A stretch of 64,000 bases of DNA from Macrostomum lignano. Lineage: Eukaryota. The translations under genes and the position numbers were made by a program. Location: the NCBI GenBank assembly GCA_002269645.1, contig NIVC01001931.1, positions 1 to 64,000 on the forward strand, read 5' to 3'. The notes under the pieces were generated by a model. The model was given only the letters and a program-made list of their open reading frames with translations. It was not told the DNA's origin and ran no database searches. This document shows, piece by piece, positions 94 to 64,000 of this stretch; positions within the stretch are counted from its first letter, which is position 1; each line of letters starts with the position of its first letter.

Positions 94-3000
94 TCTGCAC
101 GGTGATGTTGTTCATGTGCATATCGCTGCCGGCCTTGGCTTCTGGCTGGACACCCAGCCGAGCAGCAGTTTGCGCAGGTGGTACTCTGACCAGCTGGCGT
201 CCTCGGGCACCATCCGGGCGTCAAACACGACGCTGTAATCGCTCGCGCTCGCCGACTCTGCGATAATCGAAGTCTGCGTTGGCCGGACTGCCGAGCTGGT
301 AGTGCCGGCGGCCAGGAACTGGTTGCTGCGGCGGCCGGGTCGAATGCCGGCACCAGCGCGGGGCGACCAGTGGAGTCAGAGATGATGTAAGGATGGGGTC
401 AGGACGACTCTGCAGTGCCGATTCTTCCATAGCGGTTTCAGTGATTGGGTCTTTTTGTGTCTACTGAGGGCCCCTCGCGCATGTGCGCAAGCAGGGAGGG
501 ATAGAGACGGGGGATGAGACAATGAACGGGCGAGGCGACAAAACACCCCCACAATTGATCCAACTTTCCTCAGCCTTACTCACACAAAGCAATTCTTACA
601 ATGTAATCACATGGTCTTCAGGGATGGGATCGTCAGAGATAAGATCGTCAGGGATGGATCGTTAGCAATGGGATCGGCAGCGATGGAATCGTCAGCGGTG
701 GGATCGTCAGGGATGCGATTGTCAGATGGGGTCGCCCAGCACTCACGTGATCGTCCAGCAAGTGCCGTCTCTTCTCAGCATAGTTATTTACGGTGAGCAG
801 CTCAACTCCGGCAAAGTGCACAGCCGAGCTGTACTCGGCCTCGATGTTGATGAAGATTCTTCGCGTCGCGTCGCAGTAGACACACGGGGTCTTCGTGTCA
901 ACCAAGTCGAGAGAAATTCGAGAAACTCGCCGGTGAAGTTGGTGGCAAAGTACTGCTTCAGCAAGGTGGTGTTCCAGGTGTTGGTGTCGACCTCGGCCGG
1001 GTTGCGGGCCCCGATGTGGAAGCGGACGACGCAGTTGCCCCCATCCGGCACGGTGGCCACCTTGCGGCCGATGCGATAGCGGCTCGAGTCCAGACTGCTC
1101 AACTGCGGGTGTGGCGATTCCGGGAAGACTTTTAGGGAAGGGTAGATTAAATGATAGATTATAGGGTAGAGTGAAGGGTTAGAGTGAAGGGTAGAATGAA
1201 GGGTAAAATGAAGGATAGAATGAAGAGCAGATTGAAGTGTAGATTTAAAGGTAGATTGAAGATTAGAGTGAAGGGTAAAGGGAAGGGTGGATTGAAGGGC
1301 AGATTGCAGGTTAGGGCGCAGGTTTAGGTACAACAGCTCAATTTTAATTACCTTCTGTCTTAAGATCGCATCGGTGCATTTCTCCTGAGACAGGCCGGAA
1401 AAAGTCAGGATGACCTCCTTGTCCAGCGGCGACACCACCATCACGGGCTCGGCCTCGGCAGCAGAGGGTACAGCTCCACGTCTGTCAGCGGCTCCGGCAC
1501 GACGGAGAACAGGCCCGTGATCTCGTTGAACTCGCGGAAGGCGGACAGAAAGTTGCGGGCGAAGTCCTCCTCCTGCCATAGCAGGCGGTTGCGGAAGCCG
1601 GTGTCGATCAGCTCCGAGTCCCGCATGAGGACGTAGCTTAGCGTGATCTGCTGCCTGCAGAGCGGCCGGATGGGAGCCTGCTGACCCACCTGACTGCTAC
1701 TGGCTCTACCTGTCTACTGCTGGTTTTATTTGCCTGCTACCTGATCTACCTGACTGCTACTTGATCTACCTGACTGCTGCTTGATCTACCTGACTGCTGC
1801 TTGATCTACCTGACTGCTGCTTGATCTACCTGACTGCTGCTTGATCTACCTGACTGCTAGGGGTTCCAGGGGAGCTAGTTGTGCTTACCTACTCATATTT
1901 TGGTAACTGGAAAAACCAACGGCTCCTAAAGATAGCAATTTATTAAAATCATGTCCTTTTGAGTCCCGCAATTACAAGCATATTGAGCAAGAATCTTGGG
2001 AACTGAGCCTCGTCAATTTTAGCGTACTGAAGCATCTCTTAGAAATTTCATTGCTTATTAAAAGCGCGAATAAATTGAATTTTTCTGTCCAGCCAATTCG
2101 TCAAAGTTCTCTGTTTGCGCTAGCCCATTGTTCTCCTCAGTTATACCTGAACTGAGTCCGGACTGATTGGGTACAAAATTAAAATTTCAACTCGCGGGTT
2201 TTACTGCCGTTTAGTCACTCAGATACGAATTAAATAAACCTGCAGTTGAATATTCCGAGGGCAGGGCTATTCAGAGCTTCTTTTAGCTTCAATAAATTTA
2301 TTGAGGTCTCTTCTGCGGGGATTTCGGTACCCAGGGGCGGTCCGGCAGGTGAGAGACAGCGGATTAGCACACAGGGCCAGTTGCAGGAATGAGATGGCCA
2401 TGACTGAAGCAAGGGCAAGCGATGCAAAGGCACTCGCAAGCACACAATTGAATTGTAATTTGCTTTCGTCACACCAGATTCACCAATTATTAATAATATT
2501 TCAGTAATCATAACTATCCAAAACAGCGGCTCACCTCTCCTCTTCGATCTCAATGGGCATGTCGCTATCGAACGGCACGTAGGTGTAGATTGGCGGCTGG
2601 TTGTTCTCCCGGAGGCTGTCCCGGAAATAGTCCAGATAGAGCACCTTCACCCAGTGGCTGATGAGCTGGCGCAGCGACACGGAGTCGCCGGCGGCCGACC
2701 AGATGCGGGGCGAGACGCGCGCCCGGACCAGGTGCACCAGGCGGCGGACGGCGAACTCGCGTCGGTGCAACTCGTCGAGGCGGGGCTCGCAGGCCGCCTC
2801 CAGCAGGCAGTCGTCGCAGGCGCGGTGCGGCACGGGGCCCTGCACTCGAAGCTGGTCGGCGCGGCGCAGCAGGCCGGCGCGGAACTGGGCGAGCGCGTTG
2901 GCTGGCGAGGGTTCGAATCTCAGCGGGTCAGCGGACTGTATGGTGTACTGCGTGCGGAACTGCAGCTGCGACCCCCTGCGAATGGACACAGTCATTGGGA

Positions 3001-6000
3001 GCATCGGCTTATGCTGGGAGCCGGGCAACTTGTCCGGTGCGCTTAGATGATTAGTAAGGTGTGACCGAGTGATTTGTAAATTTGTGACCAGGTGATTTGT
3101 AAATTTGTGACCAGGTGATTTGTAAATTTGTGACCAGGTGATTTCTCATTCTGGTGATTGGGTTTCTCATTCCGGTGATTGGGTTTCTCATTCCGGTGAT
3201 TGGGTTTCTCATTCCGGTGATTGGGTTTCTCATTCTGGTGATTGGGTTTCTCATTCCGGTGATTGGGTTTCTCATTCCGGTGATTGGGATTCTCATTCCG
3301 GTGATTGGGATTCTCATTCCGGTGATTGGGTAAGCACGGTGGTGGCAAACAGGCGCCCAAACGTACACAATTTGAGCGTCCAGATTTAGGAAGGTGGCGC
3401 CCTCCACGGAGTCGGGCAACGTCAGCCGGAAGCCCCTAGCAACCAGCTTGGCCTCCTCAGTTGCGTTGGCGTAGCAGTCGGCTATGAGGCTCGCAGCGTC
3501 CTCGCGCAGCTGAGACGCGTTCTTTTGCGACCAGTGGCGCAGGTCCTCCTTGCTGAGCAGCAGGGCGTCCCGGTGGTGGATCAGTGAGGCGTTGGCGCCG
3601 GTCTCCGAGCAACCGGCGGCCGACTTGACGACAAAGACGGCGCGCTCGGGCACGCGGTTCAGGCGGATCTGCATGGCGTCTAGGCGGTAGTCACGTGACA
3701 GGAAACCGGAGCGGAACAGGCGGGCCAGGCGCTCGTTAGACCAGGTGGCCTCGCGGGAGCTGCGCAGCACGTAGTTGGCCTTGAAGGCCAGGCCGGTGGC
3801 GCTGCGGGGGAGGAGGCAGCGATGAGTATTTTTAATGGGCAGATGAGCACATCCTACATGTACATGAGCAGATCGATGAGCACATTTTGCAGGAACAGAT
3901 GAGCACATTTTACAGGAACAGATGAGCATATTTTACATGGGCAGATGAGCACATTTAAGAAATTGTACCTGGTGGCATTAACCCTTTTCACCTACAAAAA
4001 TTAGCAGATTGAGAAAGTACCTGCAGAAAGGAGCAATTCCTCACCTAGAGAGTCAGAGAGACGTAGAGTATGGCTAGAGAAACAAGCATTCTTACTCGGA
4101 AGAGATGAGCACTTTCTACATAACTGTCAACGCCCGAGACTGTTCTACCCTTGGTACGTCAGGTCTCTCAGCAGAAAGAATTGCGAGCCCCAACTCACTC
4201 GGACACGATGTCGGAGACGCTGATGGCGCCCTCGATGCTGAAAACCCGGTCATCCTCCCTGGCCTGCAGGAAGCCGGTGGACAGCCACAGGCGCAGGCCG
4301 GCCTTCGCGAATTGCGACACCAGGCGGTGGACTTTGGCCGCGCGCTGCGCCGGTGACACCGGCAGGACCGTCAAGCTCACCTGGTGCTGCACCTTGCGGC
4401 GCATCTTGTCGAACTTTGCGTCGGCCGGGTTGATTGAAGTCTGCAGGACGGCAACTTCCATGTCAGGAAAGACGAACCGAAGACCTTCCAGCAGCTCCCG
4501 CTCCAGCAGGTCCTTGCGCCACACCCGCTCCGGGTCGCCGAGGGTGGACAATGTGAATACCGCGGTGAATTCGATTCTGTCCTGCGAGCTGTTAGGAGGG
4601 AATTTTTGCGGCTTCAAGTCCGGCAGGTAGGACAGGTGGGACAGGGGACAGGTAGATCGGGAGAGATGGAAAGGTGGGAAGGTGGGAGGGTAGGAGAGGT
4701 GGGAAGATGGAGGGTGGAACAGGTGGGAAGATGGGAGGGTGGGACAGGTGAAACAGGTGGGAGGTGGTAGCGATAAGAGGGTGGGAAGGTGGGAATGGTG
4801 GATAGATGAAATAGATGAGAGAGGTGGGACAGGTGGGACAGGTGGGAGGGGGAGGGAAGAGAGATGGTAGAGCGCAAGATAAGAACAGAGGTGAGCAGAG
4901 TAGCTGCAGATGCCAACGCCAAGCAAAGGAGCTACTTGAGCTGACGAGTACAGGAGGCGTACCGGCACTCGTCCTCATCAAAGTGGTCCAAATCGAAGTC
5001 ACGCTCCCTGTCCACAGCGAAGTACTGCCTGGACGTGTAGTAGTAGGCCTTCTGCAGGATCTGCTGCGAGAACCAGGCGCCGCAGAGTCGCTTGGAGTAG
5101 TGGCTGTACCGCAGCTTGGTCACAATGAGCCGGCGCGACTCGCCAAAGTAGTTCTTGTACTTGTACTTAACGGTTCGGAAGATTTGCTTCTCTGAAATTT
5201 TTTGTCTTTTAATGCTTAGAACGGGCTATGGCACGAGTAGAGTGGTGCAGGGGTAGCTAGAGTGGTGCTGGTGCAGGGGTATCTAGAGTGGTGCTGGTGC
5301 AGGGGTAGCTAGAGTGGTGCTGGTGCAGGGTAGCTAGAGTGGTGCTGGTGCAGGGGTATCTAGAGTGGTGCTGGTGCAGGGGTAGCTAGAGTGGTGCTGG
5401 TGCAGGGGTAGCTAGAGTGGTGCTGGTGCAGGGGTAGCTAGAGTGGTGCTGGTGCAGGGGTATCTAGAGTGGTGCTGGTGCAGGGGTATCTAGAGTGGTG
5501 CTGGTGCAGGGGTAGCTAGAGTGGTGCTGGTGCAGGGGTAGCTAGAGTGGTGCTGGTGCAGGGGTAGCTAGAGTGGTGCTGGTGCAGGGTATCTAGAGTG
5601 GTGCTGGTGCAGGGGTAGCTAGAGTGGTGCTGGTGCAGGGGTATCTAGAGTGGTGCTGGTGCAGGGGTAGCTAGAGTGGTGCTGGTGCAGGGGTATCTAG
5701 AGTGGTGCTGGTGCAGGGGTAGCTAGAGTGGTGCTGGTGCAGGGGTAGCTAGAGTGGTGCTGGTGCAGGGGTATCTAGAGTGGTGCTGGTGCAGGGGTAT
5801 CTAGAGTGGTGCTGGTGCAGGGGTATCTAGAGTGGTGCTGGTGCAGGGGTATCTAGAGTGGTGCAGGGGTATCTAGAGTGGTGCAAGGACCGTTTATTTG
5901 ACGGTCACATCGGAGGGTCACAATGGAGGGCCACATGTGATACCATTGTTTGAGTTTCACAAAACGGTCACAGTCAAAATGCGACAGTCCCACTTTTATA

Positions 6001-9000
6001 CGGGAATTTTATAGACTTTGCTCTTTGGTGAAATGTACAAAGTTTTTTAGAAATTTTAAAGCCTTTGCACCTGGTTTCTTGATTACTCTCGTAACTCATT
6101 CGTCCCAACTCTCAGTTGCTTTCAGTTCTCCATGGAGGTTGGGAAAATCATTTTCAAAGACAAGTGCTTCCAATCAGCACCAAGTCATCAAACCAGACGG
6201 GGTCAATATTGACACGGGCATTCTAATTAAGCGAAACTGTCTGATGAAGGCCTGTGGCTCAACGCCCACGCAAAATTGCAGCATTTCTGCGGAATCAGCA
6301 GATCTTGTTTTCGACTCCGCCAGTGTCTCCGTCTGCTCAGATCTCCGCCATCGCTGCATCAGAGGTCCTGCTGTGCCACGCCTTCCCATGTTGCTCGTGG
6401 CCACCTCTGCTTGGTCTCCGTTCATGGAAATACTTGTAACTGCTTCGCTTTAATCTACTCAAACCCGATCTACTCTAATCCGATCTTCAAAGACCCAATC
6501 AACTTCGTCAATTGGACTCAACAGAAGCCCGGAATCTCAATATACTTCATTCACTGCTCAAACAAAAAAACCGAAAGCTCACCGTCGACCCGTACGCGCG
6601 CTCGAGTCGGACACGCGGCCCAGCCACCGGTGAAAGCCTTCGTCCGCGCGAATGAACCGCTCGAAGGAGTCGCGGATGTCGCCGCTCGCCGTCCGGTGTC
6701 GGCGCGGAACAGAGCGCGCAGGTTCGTAGAGGCCTCGTCTTTATCGGGTGCGAATGTCACGTTGCTGGGGTGGGGAAGGAAAAGGAGGGGGTCGGGCATG
6801 GCCCGAGTTGCTGAGAAGAAATACATCGAGTAGGAAAATCGAGAAGACGAAAGATCTGTCTCGTGAAAAAGATGGAGATGAGAGAGAGTTTCCATCGACA
6901 GGTTAGGAAAAGAATGAAAAGAAAATGAGAAAAGATGTGAAGAGAGAGGGGGGAAAAGAGGCCGGAGGAAAGAGGCGGGAGGAAGAGGCGGGGAAGAGGC
7001 GAGAGGGAAGAGGCGAGAGGGAAGAGGCGGGAGGGAAGAGGCGGGAGGGAAGAGGCGGGGAAGAGGCGGAGGGAAGAGGCGGGGGGAAGAGGCGGGAGGA
7101 AGAGGCGGAGGGAAGAGGCGGGGGAAGAGGCGGGAGGGAAGAGGCGGGGAAGAGGCGGGAGGGAAGAGGTGGGAGGGAAGAGGCGGGGGAAGAGGCGGGA
7201 GGGAAGAGGCGGGAGGGAAGAGGCGGGGGAAGAGGCGAGGAAGAGGCGGGAGGGAAGAGGCGGAGGGAAGAGGCGGGGAAGAGGCGGGAGGGAAGAGGCG
7301 GGAGGGAAGAGGCGGGGAAGAGGCGGGAGGGAAGAGGCGGGAGGGAAGAGGCGGGGAAGAGGCGGGAGGGAAGAGGCGGGAGGGAAGAGGCGGGGGAAGA
7401 GGCGGGAGGGAAGAGGCGGGGAAAGAGGCGGGAGGGAAGAGGTGGGAGGGAAGAGGCGGGGGAAGAGGCGAGAGGGAAGAGGCGGGAGGGAAGATGCGAG
7501 AGGGAAGAGGCGAGAGGGAAGAGGCGGGGGAAGAGGCGGGAGGGAAGAGGCGGGAGGGAAGAGGCGGGGAAGAGGCGGGAGGGAAGAGGCGGGAGGGAAG
7601 AGGCGGGAGGAAGATGCGAGAGGAAGAGGCGGGAGGGAAGAGGCGGGAGGGAAGAGGCGGGAGAAGAGGCGAGAGGGAAGAGGCGGGGGAAGAGGCGGGA
7701 GGGAAGAGGCGGGAGGGAAGAGGCGGGGGAAGAGGCGGAGGGAAGAGGCGGGAGGGAAGAGGCGGGAGGGAAGAGGCGGGGGAAGAGGCGGGAGGGAAGA
7801 GGCGGGAGGGAAGAGGCGGGAGGAAGAGGCGGGGAAGAGGCGGGAGGGAAGAGGCGGGAGGGAAGAGGCGGGGGAAGAGGCGGGAGGGAAGAGGCGGGAG
7901 GGAAGATGCGAGAGGGAAGAGGCGGGAGGGAAGAGGCGGGGAAGAGGCGGGGGAAGAGGCGGAGGGAAGAGGCGGGGGAAGAGGTGGGAGGGAAGAGGCG
8001 GGAGGGAAGATGCGAGAGGGAAGAGGCGGGAGGGAAGAGGCGGGAGGGAAGAGGCGGGAGGGAAGATGCGAGAGGAAGAGGCGGGGGAAGAGGCGAGAGG
8101 GAAGAGGCGGGGAAGAGGCGGGAGGGAAGAGGTGGGAGGGAAGAGGCGGGGGAAGAGGCGGGAGGGAAGAGGCGGGTGGGAAGAGGCGGGGGAAGAGGCG
8201 GGAGGGAAGAGGCGGGAGGGAAGAGGCGGGGAAGAGGCGGGAGGGAAGAGGCGGGAGGGAAGAGGCGGGGGAAGAGGCGGGAGGGAAGAGGCGGGAGGGA
8301 AGAGGCGGGGAAGAGGCGGAGGAAGAGGCGGGAGGGAAGATGCGAGAGGGAAGAGGCGGGAGGGAAGAGGCGGGAGGGAAGAGGCGGGAGGGAAGATGCG
8401 AGAGGGAAGAGGCGGGGAAGAGGTGGGAGGGAAGAGGCGGGGGAAGAGGGGCAGAGAAAAAGATGTACGAGCGTACATGGAAGCACCAGTATTCAGAGAG
8501 AAAATAACAAAAATGAAAAACTTTAAGTCAGCTGACAGGGCCGAGCAGGCTACTCACCTGAGCAGGATCATGTTGTGGAACTCGTTGGGCACGGCGCTCC
8601 GGTCGCCGTCGATCGCAGGAAGGGAAGCCGGTGCAGCAGGCTGGTCTCGCACATGGCGGTGAAGTACACGGAGTTCTCGCGCAGGTGCGACTGGCCGAGC
8701 GAACCGCCACGTTTGCCGAGTAGGAGAAGAACTTGCGGTCCGGGTAGGGCACCTCTTGCAGGTAGTCCATGCAGGCGACGATGATTGGCAGCACTGGGGT
8801 TGTGTGATTGATTGATTGGTTTACTTGGTTCACTGTGAGCACGAGATAATTGTCACAGTGAACCAAGTCAGATATGGCCTGACTTTTTAAGCTTGGGAAG
8901 AAACGAAAATGAGTCAAAAACTTGGTCGAGAATCGGATCGATAAACGATATCTCTAATAACAGTAAACTGCAGAAGCTCGAGTGGACCCAGTAGTATTTA

Positions 9001-12000
9001 TAATATTCAAGTGACAAGAATAAAGATGATCGAGGTGACCCAGGAGACTGGTCAAGTGACAGGTTGACCCAGGTGACTGGTCAGGTGACTGGTTGACCCA
9101 GGTGACTGGTTGATCCAGGTGACTGGTTGACCCAGGTGACTGGTTGACCCAGGTGACTGGTTGACCCAGGTGACTGGTTGACCCAGGTGACTGGTTGACC
9201 CAGGTGACTGGTTGACCCAGGTGACAACCAGTACAATTAGCTACCCGAGTCAACAGTACAATTAGCTAGTACAATTAGCTAAAAACTCCGGTGAGCCAGA
9301 CCCTAAGATGAATTCTGTGGCCTACGAGCGTATTTAAACGAGATGAGCAGGCAGACCTGGGATCGATAGCAAACTTTGCAGTCCTCTCAAAGCACCCCCC
9401 ACGGGTGGATTAAAAACAACAGGAAATTGTCTTATGCATCACGAAGGTCCTCCTTTTGAAAAGCTTTCGACAGTTCTATTTCGATACACCTGTAGTAACT
9501 AAATGATGAGGATGAAAGCAGCTAAGCGAACTCTGGCTAAAGAATCTAAAGAAGCGGCTCGATAAGCATAATTGGCACTGTGTGCCCCAGGAGACTCTCG
9601 CGGAGACGCGGGGGAGACATCCCTAAAAGTTCAGATGTAAATTTAAAAACAATGAAAACATTTTTTTAAATTTCTGCTGAATTTAACTCTGCATACCTGG
9701 TTTATCTGCTAGAAATATAAGATACCTGCAGTTCCTATCTGTTAGAATTAGAAAATACCTGCAGATGGGCAGTTCCTACCTGTTAGAATTAGAAAATACC
9801 TGCAGATGGGCAGTTCCTACCTGTTAGAATTAGAAAATACCTGTAGATGGGCAGTTCCTACCTGTTAGAATTAGAAAATACCTGCAGATGGGCAGTTCCT
9901 ACCTGTTAGAATTAGAAAATATCTGCAGATGGGCAGTTCCTACCTGTTAGAATTAGAAAATACCTGCAGATGGGCAGTTCCTACCTGTTAGAATCCCGAC
10001 CGGAAATAATTGTTCTTTAAATGCGTCAAATAGCACATAAAAAATGAATTGGGGGGAATCCCAAAATAACTGTCGAAATGACACGAAATTGGCGAGAATC
10101 GACAATTGGTGGCACAGCTTGGCACAAATATAACTGTGCCAAATGGCATAGCTACGGCACAATTGGTACAATTGTATCAAGTGTGCCAAATATGACATAC
10201 AAAGACATTTGTAACTCTGTCAAAGGGCATGTTTGTGGCACAACTGGCACACTTACTGTTTTTGAAAGGACAAATATTTTCGGTCGGGATTAGAAAATAC
10301 CTGCAGATGGGCAGTTCCTACCTGTTAGAATTAGAAAATACCTGCAGATGGGCAGTTCCTACCTGTTAGAATTAGAAAATACCTGCAGATGGGCAGTTCC
10401 TACCTGTTAGAATTAGAAAATACCTGCAGATGGGCAGTTCCTACCTGCTCGACAATCTGTCCCTAATCATTGTGAGTAAATTCCTACAATAAGTCAAAGC
10501 ACTCGGCTCAAATAGCAGTGTGAGCGAGTCTGAACTCACCTGAAATTCGCACATTGCTCAGCCGCAGGAAGAACACATCGCCAGACGAATGAGTCTCCAT
10601 GTAGTGCTCGAGGTTGTGCAGAAATTGTGCGGCCAAATCGGTTGAATTCGGATGCCGCTCGTTCCTGGCAGTGATCCACAGGTCCAGCTGAGCATTCACC
10701 ATCACCTTCTGGCCCAGCACCTCCAGCTCGAATGCGTTGTTCTTATGATGCATTGTGTAATAGTGGTCTCCGTTCTCTAGCAAGTAATGTACCTGTGTGC
10801 GAGGCGAGCCATTGTTCAATTCGTTAGATTTTTAGAGAAATTTTTTCATAGATTTGGGCTTTGAAATACATCCCCTGAAGGGATGGCTCCGCTTCACTTG
10901 AGGCATCTCCCCATGCCACACCTGGGAATCTCCCTATTTCCCACCTGGGAATCTCCCCATGCCCCACCTGGGAATCTCCCCATGCCCCACCTGGGAATCT
11001 CCCCATGCCCCACCTGGGAATCGCCCCATGCCCCATCTGGGAATCTCACCATGCCCCATCTGGGAATCTCCCCATGCCCCACTTGGGAATCTCCCCATGC
11101 CACACCTGGGAATCTCCCCATGCCACACCTGGGAATCGCCCCATGCCCCACCTGGGAATCGCCCCATGCCCCATCTGGGAATCTCCCCATGCCCCACCTG
11201 GGAATCTCCCCATGCCCCACCTGGGAATCTCCCCATGCCCCACCTGGGAATCGCCCCATGCCCCATCTGGGAATCTCACCATGCCCCATCTGGGAATCTC
11301 CCCATGCCCCACTTGGGAATCTCCCCATGCCACACCTGGGAATCTCTCCATGCCACACCTGGGAATCGCCCCATGCCCCACCTGGGAATCGCCCCATGCC
11401 CCATCTGGGAATCTCCCCATGCCCCATCTGGGAATCTTCCCATGCCCCACTTGGGAATCTCCCCATGCCACACCTGGGAATCTCCCCATGCCCCACTTGG
11501 GAATCTCCCCATGCCACACCTGGGAATCTCCCCATGCCCCACTTGGGAATCTCCCCATGCCACACCTGGGAATCTCCCCATGCCCCACTTGGGAATCTCC
11601 CCATGCCACACCTGGGAATCTCCCCATGCCCCATCTGGGAATCTCCCCATGCCCCACCCGGGAATCTCCCCATGCCACACCTGGGAATCTCCTCATGCTC
11701 CACCTGGGAATCTCCCCATGCCCCATCTGGGAATCTCCCCATGCCCCGTCTGGGAATCTTCCCATGCCCCACTTGGGAATCTCCCCATGCCCCACCTGAG
11801 AATCTCCCCATGCCTCATCTGGGAATCTCCCCATGCCACACCTGGGAATCTCCCCATGCCACACCTGGGAATCTCCTCATGCTCCACCTGGGAATCTCCC
11901 CATGCCCCACCTGGGAATCTCCCCATGCCCCACCCGGGAATCTCCCCATGCCACACCTGGGAATCTCCTCATGCTCCATTTGGGAATCTCCCCATGCCCC

Positions 12001-15000
12001 ATCTGGGAATCTCCCCATGCCCCATCTGGGAATCTTCCCATGCCCCATCTGGGAATCTCCCCATGCCCCACCTGAGAATCTCCCCATGCCTCATCTGGGA
12101 ATCTCCCCATGCCACACCTGGGAATCTCCCTATGCCACACCTGGGAATCTCCCTATGCCACACCTGGGAATCTCCTCATGCTCTACCTGGGAATCTCCCC
12201 ATGCCCCCATGATTTTTGAGCAGACAAGGAGAACGGCCGGCCGAGCTTCCTACCAAGACCTCCACTGAGTTGTTGAGCCGGGCAGAGTTGGTGAGCAGCT
12301 CGCGGCTAAAGAATGGCGACAGTTCGACAGTCATCTGCAGCTTGATTCGCTCCTTGTTCTCCTGCACATACGGACAGGTGATGATCTCTCGGTAGATGTC
12401 GCAAATGTCCCGGACAGGCACTTGAACGCCTGGATATGGAGTTTCAGTACGAGATATGAAAGCCGCTGCGCGAGTGCTCAAAGGAGGGCACATCAGCTCG
12501 CTTACCCATGGAGTTGAAGGCGGACTTGGGCACGTCGATCCGCCACACTCTAGCGATCAGATCCAGGAAGCCGGCCGGCAGCTCGAACTTGGCCGAGCTG
12601 GACTGGCCTGGCCGCAGCTGCTGGTCTTTCTCCAGGCTGACGAAAATCACCAGGTGGTTCGGGCCGACCAAGACTCGATTCACGTCCGGATTGTAGCGGC
12701 CGGTGACGGTGAAAGCGCTGGCGTTGAATGCGCGCTGCAGCACTTCGTCCACCTTGTCAATCACCTGCTCATTTGTCAAGCCGTCCAGAGAGGACTTGGC
12801 AGCCAGGTCGGAGATGCTCAGCAAGACGGTGAACTTCCGGCGCGTGATGATGGTCAGATAGGGGCAATCTGCAAATGGGGGGCAAGCTCGGGTACTTTCA
12901 AATATTCGCAAGAGGGCTGCGGCACCCTTGCGAAACGCCTTCCGCGACATCAGAAACCAGTGGCGAGGCAACTCTGCTCATTCCTCTGACTCCTGAGCAC
13001 ATGAATTACTTGAAGGGCACCAACACTGTACGCAGGCACGCATTCATACACGCGCTCACACAGGGTGCACAGCGGCCCTGACTTTTTAATCGTCAAGCAT
13101 GTTTATCGCCGTCATATTCTGCCGCTAGTCCCGGGAGTTCGTACTCAATTGTTTCTGAGAACATTTTTGTGTGAGGCACAAATCCGAGCAAAAACTCACT
13201 GAGATTTTGGCCGACCTCCGCTTCCGACCGCGTGACCGGTGCATCGTCCGGTGCAGGTGGAAGGACGCTGTCCGGGCCAGCTGGCGATCCCGGCGAGAGA
13301 GCGGTCCCATCGGCTCCGCCAGAAAATGGATCCCGGGGGCACCGGCTGGCGAAGCGTCTGGTGCACTGACGGGCGAATCTTCAGGGGGGCGAGGTGGGCC
13401 AAACGGATCAGAAGGTGGACCGGCTGGCTGATCGACAGGTGGACCGGCTGGTTGATCGACAGGTGGACCGGCCGGTTGATCGACAGGTGGACCGGCCGGT
13501 TGATCGACAGGTGGACCGGCCGGTTGATCGACAGGTGGACCGGCTGGCTGATCGACAGGTGGACCGGCTGGTTGATCGACAGGTGGACCGGCTGGCTGAT
13601 CGACAGGTGGACCGGCTGGTTGATCGACAGGTGGACCGGCTGGTTGATCGACAGGTGGACCGGCCGGTTGATCGACAGGTGGACCGGCCGGTTGATCGAC
13701 AGGTGGACCGGCCGGTTGATCGACAGGTGGACCGGCTGGCTGATCGACAGGTGGACCGGCCGGTTGATCGACAGGTGGACCGGCTGGTCGATCGACAGGT
13801 GAACCTGCTGGCTGATCGACAGGTGGACCGTCAAGCAGGCTGTCCGCTGAACCACCTCGTCCTCCTCCAGTTGGGCCGTCAAGCGAGCTGCCCGCTGAAC
13901 CTCCACGTCCTCCAGTTGGGCCGTCAAGCGAGCTGCCCGCTGAACCTTCTCGTCCTCCAGTTGGGCCGTCAAGCGAGCTGCCCGCTGAACCTTCTCGTCC
14001 TCCTCCAGTTGGGCCGTCAAGCGAGCTGCCCGCTGAACCTCCTCGTACCCTCCTCCAGTTGGGCCGTCAAGCGAGCTGCCCGCTGAACCTTCTCGTCCTC
14101 CTCCAGTTGGGCCGTCAAGCGAGCTGCCCGCTGAACCTCCTCGTCCTCCTCCAGTTGGGCCGTCAAGCGAGCTGCCCGCTGAACCTCCTCGTCCTCCTCC
14201 AGTTGGGCCGTCAAGCGAGCTGCCCGCTGAACCTTCTCGTCCTCCAGTTGGGCCGTCAAGCGAGCTGCCCGCTGAACCTCCTCGTCCTCCTCCAGTTGGG
14301 CCGTCAAGCAAGCTGCCCGCTGAACCTCCACGTCCTCCAGTTGGGCCGTCAAGCGAGCTGCCCGCTGAACCTCCTCGTCCTCCTCCAGTTGGGCCGTCAA
14401 GCGAGCTGCCCGCTGAACCTCCTCGTCCTCCTCCAGTTGGGCCGTCAAGCGAGCTGCCCGCTGAACCTTCTCGTCCTCCAGTTGGGCCGTCAAGCGAGCT
14501 GCCCGCTGAACCTCCTCGTCCTCCTCCAGTTGGGCCGTCAAGCAAGCTGCCCGCTGAACCTCCACGTCCTCCAGTTGGGCCGTCAAGCGAGCTGCCCGCT
14601 GAACCTCCTCGTCCTCCTCCAGTTGGGCCGTCAAGCGAGCTGCCCGCTGAACCTCCACGTCCTCCTCCAGTTGGGCCGTCAAGCGAGCTGCCCGCTGAAC
14701 CTTCTCGTCCTCCAGTTGGGCCGTCAAGCGAGCTGCCCGCTGAACCTCCTCGTCCTCCTCCAGTTGGGCCGTCAAGCAAGCTGCCCGCTGAACCTCCACG
14801 TCCTCCAGTTGGGCCGTCAAGCGAGCTGCCCGCTGAACCTTCTCGTCCTCCAGTTGGGCCGTCAAGCGAGCTGCCCGCTGAACCTCCTCGTCCTCCTCCA
14901 GTTGGGCCGTCAAGCAAGCTGCCCGCTGAACCTCCACGTCCTCCAGTTGGGCCGTCAAGCGAGCTGCCCGCTGAACCTCCTCGTCCTCCTCCAGTTGGGC

Positions 15001-18000
15001 CGTCAAGCGAGCTGCCCGCTGAACCTCCTCGTCCTCCTCCAGTTGGGCCGTCAAGCGAGCTGCCCGCTGAACCTTCTCGTCCTCCAGTTGGGCCGTCAAG
15101 CGAGCTGCCCGCTGAACCTCCTCGTCCTCCTCCAGTTGGGCCGTCAAGCAAGCTGCCCGCTGAACCTCCACGTCCTCCAGTTGGGCCGTCAAGCGAGCTG
15201 CCCGCTGAACCTTCTCGTCCTCCAGTTGGGCCGTCAAGCGAGCTGCCCGCTGAACCTCCTCGTCCTCCTCCAGTTGGGCCGTCAAGCGAGCTGCCCGCTG
15301 AACCTTCTCGTCCTCCAGTTGGGCCGTCAAGCGAGCTGCCCGCTGAACCTCCTCGTCCTCCTCCAGTTGGGCCGTCAAGCAAGCTGCCCGCTGAATTTTC
15401 TCGTCCTCCGCCAGAGTCGTCATTGAGTTGTCTCTTCGCCCTGGCAAGCCGCCGCTGCCGGTGTTGAGCCACAGCTCCATCGCTGTTGCCGGGGCGAGAC
15501 GAGCAGCTCAGGCCGGATTCGCGCCGAACCCGCCGGTGCAGGTACAGAGCCGACAGGCTGTCGTCAAGCAGAAAGTTTTCAGCGCCCGAGGCGTTGCCGA
15601 TCTGGCAAAAAAATCGGATAGTGCGTGAGAAGTTAAAAGTACAAATGAAATTCGAAATCGATTGCAAAAAGTAGCACCTCTAACAGCCGGTTCAGTGAGA
15701 CCTTGAAGTCCAGGTTGAATATACGGTAGAGGTCGACACCTGGATAGCGAATGGGGTGGTAATTTGTAAATCAGTCAATTTCTACCAAAATTTAACATTC
15801 AAAATAAAAGATATTCAGCTTACATTTGCTGTTTTGAGCAGTAAACTTGAGCAGAGCGAAGTTCTCGCTGTTAACTGCAATCGGCGAGTTCTCAATTAGT
15901 ATTATTCAACCATTGATGAGTAATTAAAAACTTTCTAGCAGTCTAAAATACCTTTGAGCAGTACCGAAGCGCTGGCAGGCTTCAGTCTGTCGGCCAGGTA
16001 ATTAACAATCAGCCGTGGCGAGGTAATTACCGCCGACATTAGCAGAGCCCGGCTCGGATGGCTTTGGCTTGCCGTCCTGTGCAGAAATGAAATATCACAT
16101 GGGGAAGGGGTGCACTCAAAGACCTTTAGAAGTAGATGGCCGGGCACAGTTCAGTGCCGGGAACGAGTTTGATGGCTGAGAACACTGCCGAGATAGCGCT
16201 TGAGGATTGTGCCTTATCCTTTCGAGCTTAACCGGACCAGTTTTCGAATATTTTCAATTTGATGCGACAATGCAGAGAAATAAAGAATTTGTGTCTAGTC
16301 CACCTATTTCTAGTTTTAGTGGTCCTCGGCTCATTGAAAGCTCAGAGTTTAATTACATTTACGGATAGCAACCCAGTTTCGGATTACCTTGGCCTGATTT
16401 TAATATATGAAAAATCTGACAAAATGGAACTGCCGTAATTAAAGAGCCGATACTCAAAGAGACGGAAATCAGAGGTGTATAACAAGGATGATATGTACGG
16501 CAGTGTTCCTATCATGATGAATTCTGCACTTTTATACAGTGGGTGCCATTTTGATGAGATAGGTGCCACTTTAATAGACTGGTTGCCACTGTAATAGAAT
16601 GGGTGCCACTTTATTAGACTGGGTGCCACTTTAATGGAATTGGTGCCACTTTAATAGACTGGGTGCCACTTTAATAGACTGGGTGCCACTTTAATAGACT
16701 GGGTGCCACTTTATTAGACTGGGTGCCATTTTAATAGAATGGGTGCCACTTTAATAGAATGAGTGCCACTTTAATAGAATGGGTGCCGCTGTAATAGAAT
16801 GGGTGCCAGTTTGATAGAATGGGTGCCAGTTTGATAGAATGGGTGCCAGTTTGATAGAATGGGTGCCAGTTTAATAGAATGGGTGCCAGTTTGATAGAAT
16901 GGGTGCCACTTTATTAGACTGGGTGCCAGTTTGATAGAATGGGTGCCAGTTTAATAGAATGGGTGCCAGTTTGATAGAATGGGTGCCAGTTTGATAGAAT
17001 GGGTGCCAGTTTGATAGAATGGGTGCCAGTTTAATAGAATGGGTGCCAGTTTGATAGAATGGGTGCCAGTTTGATAAAATGGGTGCCAGTTTAATAGAAT
17101 GGGTGCCAGTTTGATAGAATGGGTGCCAGTTTGATAGAATGGGTGCCAGTTTAATAGAATGGGTGCCAGTTTAATAGAATGGGTGCCAGTTTAATAGAAT
17201 GGGTGCCAGTTTAATAGAATGGGTGCCAGTTTGATAGAATGGGTGCCAGTTTAATAGAATGGGTGCCACTTTATTAGACTGGGTGCCAGTTTGATAGAAT
17301 GGGTGCCAGTTTAATAGAATGGGTGCCAGTTTAATAGAATGGGTGCCAGTTTAATAGAATGGGTGCCAGTTTAATAGAATGGGTGCCAGTTTAATAGAAT
17401 GGGTGCTAGTTTGATAGAATGGGTGCCAGTTTGATAGAATGGGTGCCAGTTTGATAGAATGGGTGCCAGTTTGATAGAATGGGTGCCAGTTTGATAGAAT
17501 GGGTGCCAGTTTGATAGAATGGGTGCCAGTTTGATAGAATGGGTGCCAGTTTGATAGAATGGGTGCCAGTTTAATAGAATGGGTGCCAGTTTGATAGAAT
17601 GGGTGCCAGTTTAATAGAATGGGTGCCAGTTTGATAGAATGGGTGCCAGTTTGATAGAATGGGTGCCAGTTTGATAGAATGGGTGCCAGTTTGATAGAAT
17701 GGGTGCCAGTTTAATAGAATGGGTGCCAGTTTAATAGAATGGGTGCCAATTTGATAGAATGGGTGCCAGTTTAATAGAATGGGTGCCAGTTTGATAGAAT
17801 GGGTGCCAGTTTGATAGAATAGGTGCCAGTTTAATAGAATGGGTGCCAGTTTGATAGAATGGGTGCCAGTTTGATAGAATGGGTGCCACTTTATTAGAAT
17901 GGGTGCCAGTTTGATAGAATGGGTGCCAGTTTGATAGAATGGGTGCCAGTTTGATAGAATGGGTGCCAGTTTGATAGAATGGGTGCCAGTTTAATAGAAT

Positions 18001-21000
18001 GGGTGCCAGTTTGATAGAATGGGTGCCAGTTTAATAGACTGGGTGCCAGTTTAATAGAATGGGTGCCAGTTTGATAGAATGGGTGCCAGTTTGATAGAAT
18101 GGGTGCCAGTTTAATAGAATGGGTGCCAGTTTGATAGAATGGGTGCCAGTTTGATAGAATGGGTGCCAGTTTGATAGAATGGGTGCCAGTTTGATAGAAT
18201 GGGTGCCAGTTTGATAGAATGGGTGCCAGTTTAATAGACTGGGTGCCAGTTTGATAGAATGGGTGCCAGTTTGATAGAATGGGTGCCAGTTTGATAGAAT
18301 GGGTGCCAGTTTGATAGAATGGGTGCCAGTTTGATAGAATGGGTGCCAGTTTAATAGACTGGGTGCCAGTTTAATAGAATGGGTGCCAGTTTGATAGAAT
18401 GGGTGCCAGTTTGATAGAATGGGTGCCAGTTTGATAGAATGGGTGCCAATGTAAAAGGATAGGGCCACTTTATTAGAATGGGTGCCAGTTTGATAGAATG
18501 GGTGCCAGTTTGATAGAATGGGTGCCAGTTTGATAGAATGGGTGCCAATGTAAAAGGATAGGGCCACTTTATTAGAATGGGTGCCAGTTTGATAGAATGG
18601 GTGCCAGTTTGATAGAATGGGTGCCAGTTTGATAGAATGGGTGCCAGTTTGATAGAATGGGTGCCAGTTTGATAGAATGGGTGCCAGTTTGATAGAATGG
18701 GTGCCAGTTTGATAGAATGGGTGCCAGTTTGATAGAATGGGTGCCAGTTTGATAGAATGGGTGCCAGTTTAATAGAATGGGTGCCAGTTTAATAGAATGG
18801 GTGCCAGTTTGATAGAATGGGTGCCAGTTTGATAGAATGGGTGCCAGTTTGATAGAATGGGTGCCAGTTTGATAGAATGGGTGCCAGTTTGATAGAATGG
18901 GTGCCAATGTAAAAGGATAGGGCCACTTTATTAGAATGGGTGCCAGTTTGATAGAATGGGTGCCAGTTTGATAGAATGGGTGCCAGTTTGATAGAATGGG
19001 TGCCAATGTAAAAGGATAGGGCCACTTTATTAGAATGGGTGCCAGTTTGATAGAATGGGTGCCAGTTTGATAGAATGGGTGCCAGTTTGATAGAATGGGT
19101 GCCAGTTTGATAGAATGGGTGCCAGTTTGATAGAATGGGTGCCAGTTTGATAGAATGGGTGCCAGTTTGATAGAATGGGTGCCAGTTTAATAGAATGGGT
19201 GCCAGTTTGATAGAATGGGTGCCAGTTTGATAGAATGGGTGCCAGTTTGATAGAATGGGTGCCAGTTTGATAGAATGGGTGCCAGTTTAATAGACTGGGT
19301 GCCAGTTTAATAGAATGGGTGCCAGTTTGATAGAATGGGTGCCAGTTTGATAGAATGGGTGCCAGTTTAATAGACTGGGTGCCAGTTTAATAGAATGGGT
19401 GCCAGTTTGATAGAATGGGTGCCAGTTTGATAGAATGGGTGCCAGTTTGATAGAATGGGTGCCAGTTTGATAGAATGGGTGCCAGTTTAATAGACTGGGT
19501 GCCAGTTTAATAGAATGGGTGCCAGTTTGATAGAATGGGTGCCAATTTAATAGACTGGGTGCCAGTTTAATAGAATGGGTGCCAGTTTAATAGAATGGGT
19601 GCCAGTTTGATAGAATGGGTGCCAGTTTGATAGAATGGGTGCCAGTTTGATAGAATGGGTGCCAGTTTGATAGAATGGGTGCCAGTTTGATAGAATGGGT
19701 GCCAGTTTGATAGAATGGGTGCCAGTTTGATAGAATGGGTGCCAATGTAAAAGGATAGGGCCACTTTATTAGAATGGGTGCCAGTTTGATAGAATGGGTG
19801 CCAGTTTGATAGAAGAATGGGTGCCAGTTTGATAGAATGGGTGCCAATGTAAAAGGATAGGGCCACTTTATTAGAATGGGTGCCAGTTTGATAGAATGGG
19901 TGCCAGTTTGATAGAATGGGTGCCAGTTTGATAGAATGGGTGCCAGTTTGATAGAATGGGTGCCAGTTTGATAGAATGGGTGCCAATGTAAAAGGATAGG
20001 GCCACTTTATTAGAATGGGTGCCAGTTTGATAGAATGGGTGCCAGTTTGATAGAATGGGTGCCAGTTTGATAGAATGGGTGCCAGTTTGATAGAATGGGT
20101 GCCAGTTTGATAGAATGGGTGCCAGTTTGATAGAATGGGTGCCAGTTTGATAGAATGGGTGCCATGGAGAACATGTGACAAATGTAATTTCTTTTCTATG
20201 TGCTCTTTTTCAGACCCAGGCACACAGAGAAATACAAAAAATTCAAGTCAAGTTCACAGACACTCACAGCTGCGAGTCTGAGCATTCCATGATGGAGACC
20301 CTAGCGTCGCTTCTCAATGCGAGCTGAGTGCAGCCGGTCGCGGAACCCCTGGGCGTCCACCATAGCTCGAACAGAACGAACCGAAAGCCTTCAAGGTAGG
20401 TCTCCTCGGGACTCCACGACTCCATGTCGAACTGAGAGATTATTAATTGCGAACCGGGTTTTAGCTGGATTCATTTTACGAACGTTGACGGAAAGTATTT
20501 TCAAAAAGATTTCGTAAAAAACACATACGAGGAGAAGTTCGCTGTCAGCGAGGCCGTATTTGGACACCTTTGCTTCCGGGATTGACACAATGGCAGCTTT
20601 AAAGCAAAAGAGAAGAGGGAACAGGTGTTAACTGCGGTGCCCACTACTGAGCTATAGTCCAACCTCTACACCCACAACTACTCTGCACCCGCACCCGCAC
20701 CCACACTACACCCGCACCCACCCTCTACACCCACTACCCTCCATTCCTGCACCCACACACTCAAACTCTACACCCGCACCCAGACCCAGCCTCTACACAG
20801 AAACCCACCCTCTACACCGCACTCAGTCTACGCCCACACCTACCCTCTCAGTCTCACTTCGTATTTCCAACATTTACTTCCCATACATAACTTCTGCATC
20901 CCATACGGCATGCCGATACAATCTGCATTTCAAAAAACTTAATCTCTACATTGCATACCCAACTTAAACATCCAGTACCCCCGCCATGTTCTTGTCACCC

Positions 21001-21101
21001 AATACAAAATACGACATGGTACGAAATGAGAAATTCGCCAGTAGATGGACAATTAACTTACCTGCCAGCAGAAGCCATAAGCAGCACCTCTGAGCGCCCA
21101 T
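94..21101 (-). CDS. Large multi-exon gene for an uncharacterised secreted/extracellular modular protein (3' end beyond the window start); six apparent -1 frame breaks
   Basis: Manually spliced exons (minus strand): 21101-21062 (MGAQRCCLWLLLA), 20596-20529, 20431-20268, 16076-15952, 15739-15678, 15601-13200, 12868-12506, 12429-12254, 10792-10540, 8793-8558, 6764-6583, 5191-4936, 4588-4199, 3801-3367, 2975-2535, 1654-1352, 1102-792, about 318-94. All have GT/AG ends. Intron phases match at every junction except 13200 to 12868, which is unresolved (a small exon near 13010-13080 may be missing). The N-terminus MGAQRCCLWLLLAAAIVSIPEA is signal-peptide-like. About 6.4 kb of coding sequence lies in the window. 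Confidence 0.8.
1691..1860. repeat. 20-bp intronic minisatellite (TGACTGCTGCTTGATCTACC)
   Basis: About 8 tandem copies visible. Confidence 0.9.
3062..3330. repeat. Adjacent 23-bp and 21-bp intronic minisatellites
   Basis: GTGATTTGTAAATTTGTGACCAG about 3 copies, then GTGATTGGGTTTCTCATTCCG about 9 copies. Confidence 0.9.
4620..4860. repeat. Degenerate purine-rich AGGTGGGA(C) intronic repeat
   Basis: Repeated aggtggga/acaggtgg words fill the intron. Confidence 0.75.
5237..5885. repeat. 26-bp intronic minisatellite (CTAGAGTGGTGCTGGTGCAGGGGTA[G/T])
   Basis: About 25 tandem copies. Confidence 0.92.
6955..8450. repeat. 1.5 kb purine-rich intronic array (GGGAAGAGGCGGGA, 11-14 bp units)
   Basis: Almost T-free on the + strand. 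Source of the spurious P/S- and R/G/E-rich ORFs. Confidence 0.95.
9055..9225. repeat. 17-bp intronic minisatellite (GACTGGTTGACCCAGGT)
   Basis: About 9 tandem copies. Confidence 0.9.
9745..10445. repeat. 41-bp intronic minisatellite interrupted by a MITE
   Basis: TTAGAAAATACCTGCAGATGGGCAGTTCCTACCTGTTAGAA units on both sides of 9995-10288. Confidence 0.9.
9995..10288. mobile_element. 294-bp MITE (CCC termini, 2-bp TSD; CMC-like) inserted in a 41-bp minisatellite
   Basis: TIR CCCGACCGGAAATAATTGTTCTTT against the reverse complement CCCGACCGAAAATATTTGTCCTTT. TSD AT. Neighbouring repeat units show the empty site. Confidence 0.75.
10905..12210. repeat. 23-bp intronic minisatellite (TGGGAATCTCCCCATGCCCCACC)
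   Basis: About 56 copies. Stop-poor, so it generates many overlapping artefact ORFs. Confidence 0.95.
13200..15601 (-). CDS. 2.4 kb repeat-encoding exon of the large gene: RRVRR/RAKR, then (GGGRGGSAGSSLDGPT)n, then (GPPVDQPA)n, then RGRKRR
   Basis: Acceptor ttttttgccag at 15602-3 and donor gtgagt at 13199. Unique coding flanks run in frame into a 45/48-bp repeat (about 13830-15410) and a 24-bp repeat (about 13420-13830). One frame break at about 14047. Confidence 0.75.
16530..20165. repeat. 3.6 kb 20-bp intronic satellite (GGGTGCCAGTTTGATAGAAT)
   Basis: About 180 copies, degenerate at the left edge, with recurring 39-bp variant blocks. Confidence 0.97.
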
Positions 21102-22957: not shown

Positions 22958-24052
22958 CACGAAACTGACACAAAACTGCACGAAACTGACACGAAACTGA
23001 CACGAAACTGCACGAAACTGACACGAAACTGCACGAAACTGACACAAAACTGCACGAAACTGACACGAAACTGACACGAAACTGCACGAAACTGACACAA
23101 AACTGCACGAAACTGACACAAAACTGCACGAAACTGACACGAAACTGACACGAAACTGCACGAAACTGACACGAAACTGCACGAAACTGCACGAAACTGA
23201 CACGAAACTGCACGAAACTGACACGAAACTGCACGAAACTGCACGAAACTGACACGAAACTGACACGAAACTGCACGAAACTGCACGAAACTGCACGAAA
23301 CTGACACGAAACTGCACGAAACTGCACGAAACTGACACGAAACTGCACGAAACTGACATGAACTTGCACGAACTGCACGAAACTGCACGAAACTGACACG
23401 AAACTGCACGAAACTGCACGAAACTGCACGAAACTGCACGAAACTGCACGAAACTGCACGAAACTGCACGAAACTGACACGAAACTGACACGAAACTGCA
23501 CGAAACTGACACGAAACTGACACGAAACTGCACGAAACTGACACGAAACTGCACGAAACTGCACGAACTGACACGAAACTGCACGAACTGACACGAAACT
23601 GCACGAAACTGACACGAAACTGACACGAAACTGCACGAAACTGACACGAAACTGCACGAAACTGCACGAACTGACACGAAACTGCACGAACTGACACGAA
23701 ACTGCACGAAACTGCACGAAATTGCACGAAACTGACACGAAACTGCACGAAATTGCACGAAACTGCACGAACTGACACGAAACTGCACGAAATTGCACGA
23801 ACTGACACGAAACTGCACAAACTGACACGAAACTGCACGAAACTGCACGAAATTGCACGAACTGACACGAAACTGCACGAAACTGCACGAAATTGCACGA
23901 AACTGACACGAACTTGCATGAACTGCACGAAACTGCACGAACTGACACGAAACTGCACGAAACTGACACGAAACTGCACGAAACTGACACGAACTTGCAT
24001 GAACTGCACGAAACTGCACGAACTGACACGAAACTGCATGAAATTTCACGAA
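22958..24052. repeat. 10/11-bp satellite (CACGAAACTG[A]) upstream of the GPCR
   Basis: About 1.1 kb of mixed 10- and 11-bp units. Confidence 0.95.
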
Positions 24053-33093: not shown

Positions 33094-33732
33094 TCATTCA
33101 TTTCGGTGCTTTTTTAGCTGTTCAGGTGATAGTGAATTCTTCTGGTCTAAGAACGATTAACAAGAAGGCGACATGACAAAAGAACGCAAAAACATGAAGA
33201 ACTGTTTTTCCATTTTCGTATTTGAGTAAATAAAAATGAACACATGACACATTCGTCAGTAGCCTGTTTGTATTTGAGTAGAAAAGTTTGTTAAGCAAAA
33301 GCGACACACAAAAAGTGACTGACATAATTATCAATGCCCATAGAAACGTGGCTGACATAAAACTAAGCGCACACAAGCATGCTGTAACTAGCTAGTGAGT
33401 AAATCAAAATGCCAGCACCCTGCGCTGCTGCTGCCAAAAAGTAATGCAGATGCCCGTTTAGTCTGTCAGTTATGCTTACACATTTATTGAATAGTGAGAC
33501 ACATTTTAGGCAAAATAGTCAGCTGAATGAACTCATGTAACGGATAAGCAACAGCTTGGCTTGGATAACCAGAACAGGTGGCGTGTCGCTGAGCAGTCCA
33601 CACAGACAATTAGCAAAGGAAAGCACACGGACAAGGAGAGAGGGGCAGGCCGGAGGGAGTAGCGATGGCCTGCACTGCAGCAAGCTGGAGGTAGGGAGCG
33701 CCAAGCCGAGGCTTAGGAATTTAACTAATCCG

Positions 33733-34597: not shown

Positions 34598-34616
34598 GGC
34601 GGCTTGGGACTGAAAA
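34598..34616 (-). promoter_or_regulatory. 3' splice acceptor (TTTTCAG) 12 nt upstream of the UBE2K ATG; candidate trans-splice site
   Basis: The minus strand reads GGCTTTTCAG|TCCCAAGCCGCC ATG. Two AATAAA hexamers lie on the minus strand at 34899-34904 and 34931-34936. Confidence 0.45.
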
Positions 34617-36702: not shown

Positions 36703-41783
<5,081 letters not shown>

Positions 41784-63795: not shown

Positions 63796-64000
63796 ATCCA
63801 CCAGACAATAAGTAGCTAGTGCGACAATTTCCTTAGCATTATAGCGGCTCCTTTAAAATTCGCTTACTTTTACGTTTGAAATTGTGTATCTTTTATGTTT
63901 AACAAGGTGGCTCTTTTATGTTATACATTGTGGCTCTTTTATGTTATACATTGTGGCTCTTTTTTGTTCTACGCTCGTACATGGTAACTCTTTTATGTTT

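Follow-up and report, generated by a model that had tools for sequence, protein, structure and literature searches.

What gene, if any, could underlie the protein-like fragments that lie strewn among satellites at one end of a 64,000-nucleotide (nt) stretch of the flatworm Macrostomum lignano (positions 1-64,000; hereafter the window)? A first-pass annotation had posited a hidden giant secreted protein between positions 94 and 21101, scattered over 18 or more exons. We find that this locus, on the minus strand, carries the 5′ two-thirds of a single very large M. lignano gene, with further exons lying beyond the left edge of the window. The fuller interpretation, which we regard as moderately probable, is that this is one giant gene whose frame breaks are assembly indels, and whose product is secreted, cut by furin-type enzymes, and built of a low-complexity spacer and alpha/beta modules as a structural component of a secretion.

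A multi-exon gene spread among satellites

The mechanical open reading frames (ORFs) within positions 1-22000 are fragments or repeat read-throughs. Exons were sought in all three frames of the minus strand, with GT-AG sites and matching phases as requirements; coding potential was scored with a codon-usage model trained on the neighbouring genes (GC content at third codon positions, or GC3, 83%). The result is a chain of 17 exons (E1-E17) with canonical GT-AG sites and compatible phases, running from an ATG at 21101 to a donor at 94. All of the introns (16/16) are GT-AG, and the majority of their donors are GTRAGT-like. Codon-usage segments on the minus strand score 20-90 bits, with about +0.45 bits per codon in the sure exons, and outside the repeats there are none on the plus strand. 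The protein-like fragments are likewise confined to the minus strand, so that the two coordinates between which the protein had been placed turn out to be the two ends of a minus-strand gene. Added together, the exons measure 6,309 nt (2,103 codons), a total that rises to 6,335 nt (2,111 codons) if a weak alternative acceptor of E6 at 12894 is used.

Seven of the exons downstream of the repeat-bearing E5 are intact, all of them on the minus strand. E6 (12506-12868, 120 codons; CPYLTIITRRKFTVLLSISDL...AFNSM) has a strong phase-1 acceptor, TTTGCAG, in addition to the weak one at 12894. E7 (12254-12429) reads VQVPVRDICDIYREIITCPYVQENKERIKLQ...VEVL, and E8 (10540-10792), with an alternative acceptor at 10774, reads …NGDHYYTMHHKNNAFELEVLGQ…FFLRLSNVRIS. 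These are followed, after two broken exons discussed below, by E11 (4963-5191; KQIFRTVKYKYKNYFGESRRLIV…DEDEC), E12 (4199-4588, 129 codons), E13 (3367-3801, 144 codons) and E14 (2535-2975, 146 codons).

Public records and the orphan status of the gene

Independent support for this chain comes from protein records of the same species. When the clearest exon translations were concatenated and compared with 5.8 billion proteins, the single match was UniProt A0A1I8JQ18 (“FH2”) of M. lignano, which covers E4-E8 and maps to window positions 16076-10541 of the minus strand, hopping frames as it goes; its agreement with E7 is complete (59/59 residues). An exhaustive phmmer search with E12 against 1.84 billion cluster representatives returned A0A1I8IPX5 (“VWFD”), also of M. 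lignano, as its sole match, and that record used as query led in turn to A0A1I8IT96 (“PDDEXK_1”). A0A1I8IPX5 is a roughly 99% identical copy with 8 amino-acid substitutions relative to the window. A0A1I8IT96 covers E10-E17 and beyond and is 100% identical in every in-frame block, including 145/145 residues of E13. The exon chain had been derived before either of these two records was seen, and A0A1I8IT96 reproduces exactly six of the predicted junctions (E10/11, E11/12, E12/13, E13/14, E14/15 and E15/16). Together with the GT-AG chain and the strand-restricted coding signal, these records bear out the proposal of a very large multi-exon gene hidden amid satellites.

The same records show where the gene goes at the window's edge. 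Position 94 is the final base ahead of a donor (…NNITVQ A/GTGGGT, the slash marking the splice site), and since both A0A1I8IT96 and A0A1I8IPX5 go on past it (…NNITVQ/ILDP…) for about 930 amino acids (aa) more, the gene runs off the left edge, as had been suspected. If E5 is counted, the full product is estimated at about 3,000 aa; if not, at about 2,250 aa.

All three UniProt records are frame-hopping fragments that split the gene and lack E1-E3 and E9, and their names find no support in the profile searches. No FH2 domain was found in A0A1I8JQ18 (Pfam, 0 families), and the name probably derives from its Pro-rich PAGPPVDQ repeats; nor was a von Willebrand factor type D domain found in A0A1I8IPX5 (Pfam, 0 families) or a PDDEXK_1 domain in A0A1I8IT96 (Pfam, 0 families at E ≤5). 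Indeed, Pfam recognized no family in the raw ORF pieces, the frame-corrected exon products or the three public models, and searches against the sequences of the PDB gave nothing at E ≤10 beyond noise. One candidate, a match of the E7-E8 product (12254-12429 and 10540-10792) to the N-terminal part of the AMP_deaminase profile, reached 15.4 bits against a cut-off of 27 (E = 0.006), found no support in the PDB sequence search and was taken as chance. A homologue search with the E1-E5 start, E9 and E10 found no match and is uninformative, as it missed even the exact 60-aa stretch of A0A1I8JQ18; negatives of this word-indexed search are hence not to be over-read. A literature search found none of the three accessions mentioned in any paper. 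By these sequence comparisons, the gene is real, giant and lineage-restricted, with no detectable relative outside M. lignano; the first-pass annotation had likewise recognized no family, and the only relatives to emerge are the species' own records.

Frame breaks: assembly error or decay?

The straight spliced translation is open for its first 1,265 codons, given the weak acceptor at 12894, and then meets 15 stops. The continuous product of more than about 2,100 aa that had been envisaged is therefore right in its summed length but not in its continuity, the frame being broken at least seven times. A per-exon Viterbi parse, in which each frame change was charged 10 bits, places these codon-supported changes in five minus-strand exons: E9 (8558-8793; near 8684 and 8616), E10 (6583-6764; near 6695 and 6606, the two compensating each other), E15 (1352-1654; near 1459), E16 (747-1102; near 911) and E17 (94-318; near 139). 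The last of these, whose phase-1 donor at 94 closes the chain within the window, is uncertain in its 5′ half and acceptor. Nearly all of the breaks, including both of those in E9, an exon present in no public protein record, resemble the loss of a single base. Read in one frame, E9 and E10 each score −6.3 bits, and E15, E16 and E17 meet 3, 1 and 1 stops, respectively. For E9 and E10, the shifted frames are consistent with the splice phases at either end; E9 enters in frame 0 and must exit in frame 1 to join E10. Tiny introns were considered as the cause of the changes within exons and rejected, as there is no gap between the coding blocks, which abut or overlap, and no fitting GT...AG pair of more than 18 nt.

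The comparison with A0A1I8IT96 is telling in this regard. Over the in-frame blocks of E10-E17, about 855 residues, there are zero substitutions, and all the differences are frame changes. The record reads through five of the breaks in the window: the two in E10 (…ADTGRPSGDIRD… and …SDSSGVRVDEKQIF…, in an exon that it gives as …RADTGRPSGDIRDSFERF…SDSSGVRVD), that in E15 (…LLPRPSPVMVV…, with the continuation …YPLLPRPSPVMVVSPLDK, where the window has …YPLLPRPSP and a stop), that in E16 (…GEFSRISLDLV…, continuing …GEFSRISLDLVDTK) and that in E17 (…SSQNAKAGSD…). In E12 the situation is reversed, the window being clean and A0A1I8IT96 garbled. Real divergence or decay gives far more substitutions than indels; hence, a pattern of indels with no substitutions suggests that both of the underlying assemblies contain technical errors. 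The published M. lignano assembly was built from PacBio reads with Canu, was polished with Pilon and holds 180 Mb of near-identical duplications (PMC5730564). We consider a pseudogene less likely than residual indel errors, left by long-read assembly, as the source of the frame breaks.

Some observations nevertheless pull the other way. The breaks are clustered, with at least seven in 1.3 kb of exons but none in either the other 2.3 kb (seven exons) or about 2.8 kb of neighbouring genes, and this does not fit a uniform error rate. In addition, one break in E5 is a 2-nt insertion confined to a single repeat unit. We have hence kept as a rival the idea that the window holds a decaying duplicate, which gathers real frameshifts while an intact copy works elsewhere in the partly duplicated genome. 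That there is a second copy is shown by A0A1I8IPX5 with its 8 substitutions, and 180 Mb of the assembly is duplicated. Against decay, however, stand not only the many indels seen without any substitution in the approximately 855 residues but also the codon bias, which is undiminished in every shifted block, the lack of any in-frame nonsense mutation inside the codon-supported frames, and the indel-type garbling of A0A1I8IT96 itself where the window is clean. On balance, we regard a decaying duplicate as quite improbable.

Exon 5: furin-like motifs and repeat arrays

The annotation had also proposed a processed repeat cassette, which corresponds to the putative giant exon E5 (13200-15601, minus strand). 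This exon opens with a unique stretch, IGNASGAENFLLDDSLSALYLHRRVRRES...RQRRLARAKRQLNDD, continues through two repeat arrays and ends in a Pro-rich tail; A0A1I8JQ18 covers it. The unique start shows acceptable codon usage and, just ahead of the arrays, packs three motifs of the R-x-K/R-R type (RVRR, RQRR and RAKR) into 35 aa. The first array (13820-15414, minus strand) consists of 33 units of 48 or 45 nt in the GGGRGGSAGSSLDGPT frame, with a higher-order period of 234 nt made up of three 48-nt and two 45-nt units, and is followed by 17 units of 24 nt in the PAGPPVDQ frame. Peptide readings of the arrays, with a repeat length of 8-16 aa, include GSAGSSLDGPT, GSAGSSLDGPTGG and PAGPPVDQ.

Are these arrays translated? 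An 827-codon ORF spans them, but it is not evidence of coding, since the arrays are open in each of the three frames and on the opposite strand as well. Further, the frame of this long ORF scores −0.95 bits per codon across the arrays, compared with the positive score of the sure exons, and the repeat frames rich in Gly/Ser and Pro have a GC3 of 25-38%, versus 83% elsewhere in the gene. An aberrant 50-nt unit near 14050, which carries the 2-nt insertion (“GT”) mentioned above, switches the peptide frame from GSAGSSLDGPT to EEVQRAARLTAQLE, and the frame is broken a second time near 13300. We also rejected the notion that a repeat period divisible by 3 marks a coding array, because such periods occur in 5/15 distinct Tandem Repeats Finder arrays at positions 1-24000, which is the chance expectation. 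With tandem repeats constituting 15% of the M. lignano genome (PMC5730564), the cassette could, contrary to its original reading, be made of ordinary satellites that are open in all frames and lie in an intron or another frame, so that the mature protein would be devoid of it.

Other features argue for translation. A strong acceptor and a strong donor flank E5, and no usable donor lies between its unique start and the arrays. The unit lengths are 48, 45 and 24 nt, and their variation is a multiple of 3 in all but one case. Among the 15 inner units of the 24-mer array only two columns are polymorphic, and in the PAGPPVDQ frame both fall at third codon positions and are synonymous. The Pro-rich reading exits at the strong donor at 13199, and the phase in which it does so is exactly that required by the strong E6 acceptor; the public model A0A1I8JQ18 includes the arrays. 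Taking these findings together, we hold translation of the arrays to be somewhat likelier than its absence, and the untranslated reading to be the less favoured of the two but one that retains appreciable weight. If translated, the arrays would form a Gly/Ser/Pro-rich low-complexity spacer. They are not a classical multipeptide precursor, because no dibasic sites separate the repeats; what stands of the processed cassette is the trio of furin-like motifs directly before the repeat region, whereas the long ORF through that region carries no weight as coding evidence.

The 5′ end and the putative signal peptide

Three small minus-strand exons, all with good splice sites, precede the rest of the chain. 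E1 (21062-21101) supplies the ATG and the first half of a signal-peptide-like sequence, MGAQRCCLWLLLA, and ends in the phase-1 donor GTAAGT; E2 (20529-20596; acceptor TTTAAAG, donor GTATGT, phase-0 end) contributes AAIVSIPEAKVSKYGLADSELLL and has a positive codon score in that frame only. Together they encode MGAQRCCLWLLLAAAIVSIPEAK…, with a basic start and a hydrophobic core whose Kyte-Doolittle mean is 2.8 over 12 aa. This predicted signal peptide would take the protein into the secretory pathway. E3 (20268-20431; FDMESWSPEETYLEGFRFVLFELWW...CSDSQ) has a segment score of 20.3, and its donor (CT/GTGAGT) overlaps an in-frame TGA. It is separated by an intron of about 4.2 kb, filled by a 20-mer satellite, from E4 (16031-16076), the frame of which is uncertain: the reading TASQSHPSRALLMSA links E3 to E5, while A0A1I8JQ18 uses another frame and reads DGKPKPSEPGSANVGGNYLATAD.

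The signal-peptide-like character of the N terminus claimed by the first-pass annotation thus holds, but what joins it to E4 and onward is phase. The evidence for the E3-E4 link amounts to that phase and an open 15-codon reading, for which the chance expectation is about 1 in 5. As the E3 donor overlaps a TGA, E1-E3 could alternatively make up a small gene of their own that encodes a 91-aa secreted peptide, with the giant protein starting at E4 or E5 and staying inside the cell for want of a signal peptide. Such a protein might, for example, start from the ATG at 16039 after spliced-leader trans-splicing at 16076: there is an in-frame ATG 3 codons ahead of the E4 donor, and trans-splicing is frequent in M. 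lignano (PMC5730564), which together leave room for a giant protein of this kind. The 4.2-kb satellite-filled gap, the fact that A0A1I8JQ18 begins at E4 in a different frame, and the low cysteine content and unenriched N-glycosylation sequons of the product (see below) also favour two transcription units. Conversely, E3 ends in a donor that is a perfect GTGAGT, and E4 is preceded by an acceptor with a good pyrimidine tract; the E1-E5 chain is open and in phase in the window, and no AATAAA occurs between the E3 stop and the satellite. Moreover, a cluster of three furin-type motifs is sensible only in the secretory pathway. We judge a division into two units unlikely, though less so than decay of the locus, and retain the single gene beginning at E1.

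Composition and fold of the C-terminal modules

The nonrepetitive part of the protein, comprising E6-E17 and the stretch beyond the window, amounts to about 2,065 residues, with an isoelectric point of 7.6. It had been described as about 10 globular modules, a number plausible from the length alone, but neither BLASTP nor phmmer detected internal repeats linking the modules. It contains one R-x-K/R-R motif, RRRR near the C terminus. The option of a giant surface receptor, also raised by the first-pass annotation, finds no support: the 1,809 aa known from the C-terminal part contain no transmembrane stretch.

Modelled alone by AlphaFold2, E12 adopts the order beta-alpha-beta-beta-alpha-beta at low confidence (predicted local distance difference test score, or pLDDT, 53.5; predicted template modelling score 0.47). 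This order is that of the ferredoxin-like fold and of the SEA structure. A Foldseek search with the model gave no significant match, the best ones being generic ferredoxin-like sandwiches and none SEA, and a model of an 800-aa multimodule segment (pLDDT 33) was unusable. A chain of ferredoxin-like or SEA-like modules is accordingly offered here as a weakly supported lead from modelling.

Two known systems invite comparison. The first comprises Mlig-ap1 and Mlig-ap2, the temporary-adhesion proteins of M. lignano, which combine vWD, C8, TIL, EGF, TSP1, LDLa and C-lectin domains with high cysteine and possess KR-rich regions or repeats of 221-255 aa (PMC6410801). The giant orphan protein is from the same species and shares with them its very large size, apparent secretion, large repetitive regions and lack of homologues in general databases; in contrast, it has none of their domains (Pfam, 0 families), contains 1.2-1.4% Cys and has repeats of 8-16 aa. 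The gene is distinct from both. The adhesive, mucus or egg-coat role raised by the first-pass annotation stays a putative one, the domains and high cysteine of the known adhesives being missing here. The second comprises the tandem SEA-domain glycoproteins of the MUC16 type, which it may resemble in having a long chain of putative alpha/beta modules of about 110-140 aa after a low-complexity region and, going by the low-confidence model of E12, in the order of elements. It differs from them in that the SEA profile (Pfam code PF01390) finds no match in the exon products (E ≤5) or public models (E ≤1-5), a G/SVVV-type autoproteolysis motif, searched as G[ST][VIL]3, is absent from the 2,065-aa composite, and the modules show no similarity to one another.

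A proposed function

Considering these features together, our best inference is a putative secreted, convertase-processed structural glycoprotein. The predicted signal peptide in E1-E2 would bring the protein into the secretory pathway, where furin-type convertases would cut it at the RVRR/RQRR/RAKR cluster. The minisatellite-like arrays in E5 would provide the Gly/Ser/Pro-rich spacer, and a long chain of unique alpha/beta modules would form the end of the protein, which might then serve as a structural part of an extracellular secretion (mucus or rhabdite, gland or egg-coat material, for instance).

Beyond the clustered breaks, the codon scores and composition of E5 and the E3-E4 junction described above, several points count against this interpretation. 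The links E8-E9 and E9-E10, like E3-E4, have phase and codon usage as their evidence. Cys is low, at 1.2% in the composite (range 1.2-1.4%; 26 Cys in the 1,809-aa C-terminal part), and N-x-S/T sequons, at 0.8 per 100 aa, are not enriched; both are atypical of extracellular modular proteins. The fold evidence, with pLDDT values of 53 for E12 and 33 for the 800-aa segment, is also weak. We still favour the interpretation as a whole. A more specific version, in which a flatworm-specific giant secreted protein is made up of a new family of alpha/beta modules and a minisatellite translated within a 2.4-kb exon yields a spacer released by convertases, is put forward tentatively and is, taken in all its parts, rather doubtful.

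Satellites and neighbouring genes

The introns of the gene carry satellites with periods of 20, 23, 41, 17, 14, 26, 21, 12 and 15 nt, among them the 20-mer array of intron 3 (16540-20164, 181 copies), a 23-mer array in intron 7 (10905-12207, 57 copies) and a 14-mer array in intron 9 (6956-8449, 113 copies). Intergenic parts of the window hold two very large satellites, a 31-mer at 27541-33094 (179 copies, 97% identity) and a 23-mer at 60134-62487 (103 copies); further arrays in the window lie at 22958-23993, 35315-35875 and 63362-63805. Satellites are thus no peculiarity of the giant gene, as arrays also fill the window between genes, and those in its introns are passengers, ordinary for a genome with the repeat content given above.

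Scans of the window revealed no tRNA genes and no Rfam families. Divergent from the giant gene is a 385-codon intronless ORF (24352-25506, plus strand) with several hydrophobic stretches, which is seven-transmembrane-receptor-like; it has no Pfam match. An intronless gene at 34040-34639 on the minus strand encodes a ubiquitin-conjugating enzyme (Pfam UQ_con, E = 6.8e-41), with a C-terminal extension that we take to be UBA-like in the manner of UBE2K. Three intact minus-strand exons (36703-36951, 39329-39703 and 40896-41363) belong to a multipass membrane RING protein, presumably resembling RNF121; its single exons gave no Pfam match.

Implications

This locus alters no general principle, but it does correct the public record: the entries named FH2, VWFD and PDDEXK_1 all derive from one giant orphan gene and a near-identical copy of it, so that the gene was already public, though only as misnamed fragments. 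It also calls for caution on two counts. In a genome as rich in satellites and in GC3 as this one, long ORFs spanning arrays and “continuous” GT-AG chains are easy to build, and residual single-base indels break real genes too. M. lignano serves as a model of both regeneration and bioadhesion, and its known glues are giant lineage-specific secreted proteins; a full-length model would offer a concrete target for in situ hybridization and RNA interference. If the more specific version of our proposal is true, flatworm secretions (mucus, rhabdites, glue or egg coat) would have a new building block in this protein, and the locus would exemplify how the expansion of a satellite can directly lengthen a protein.

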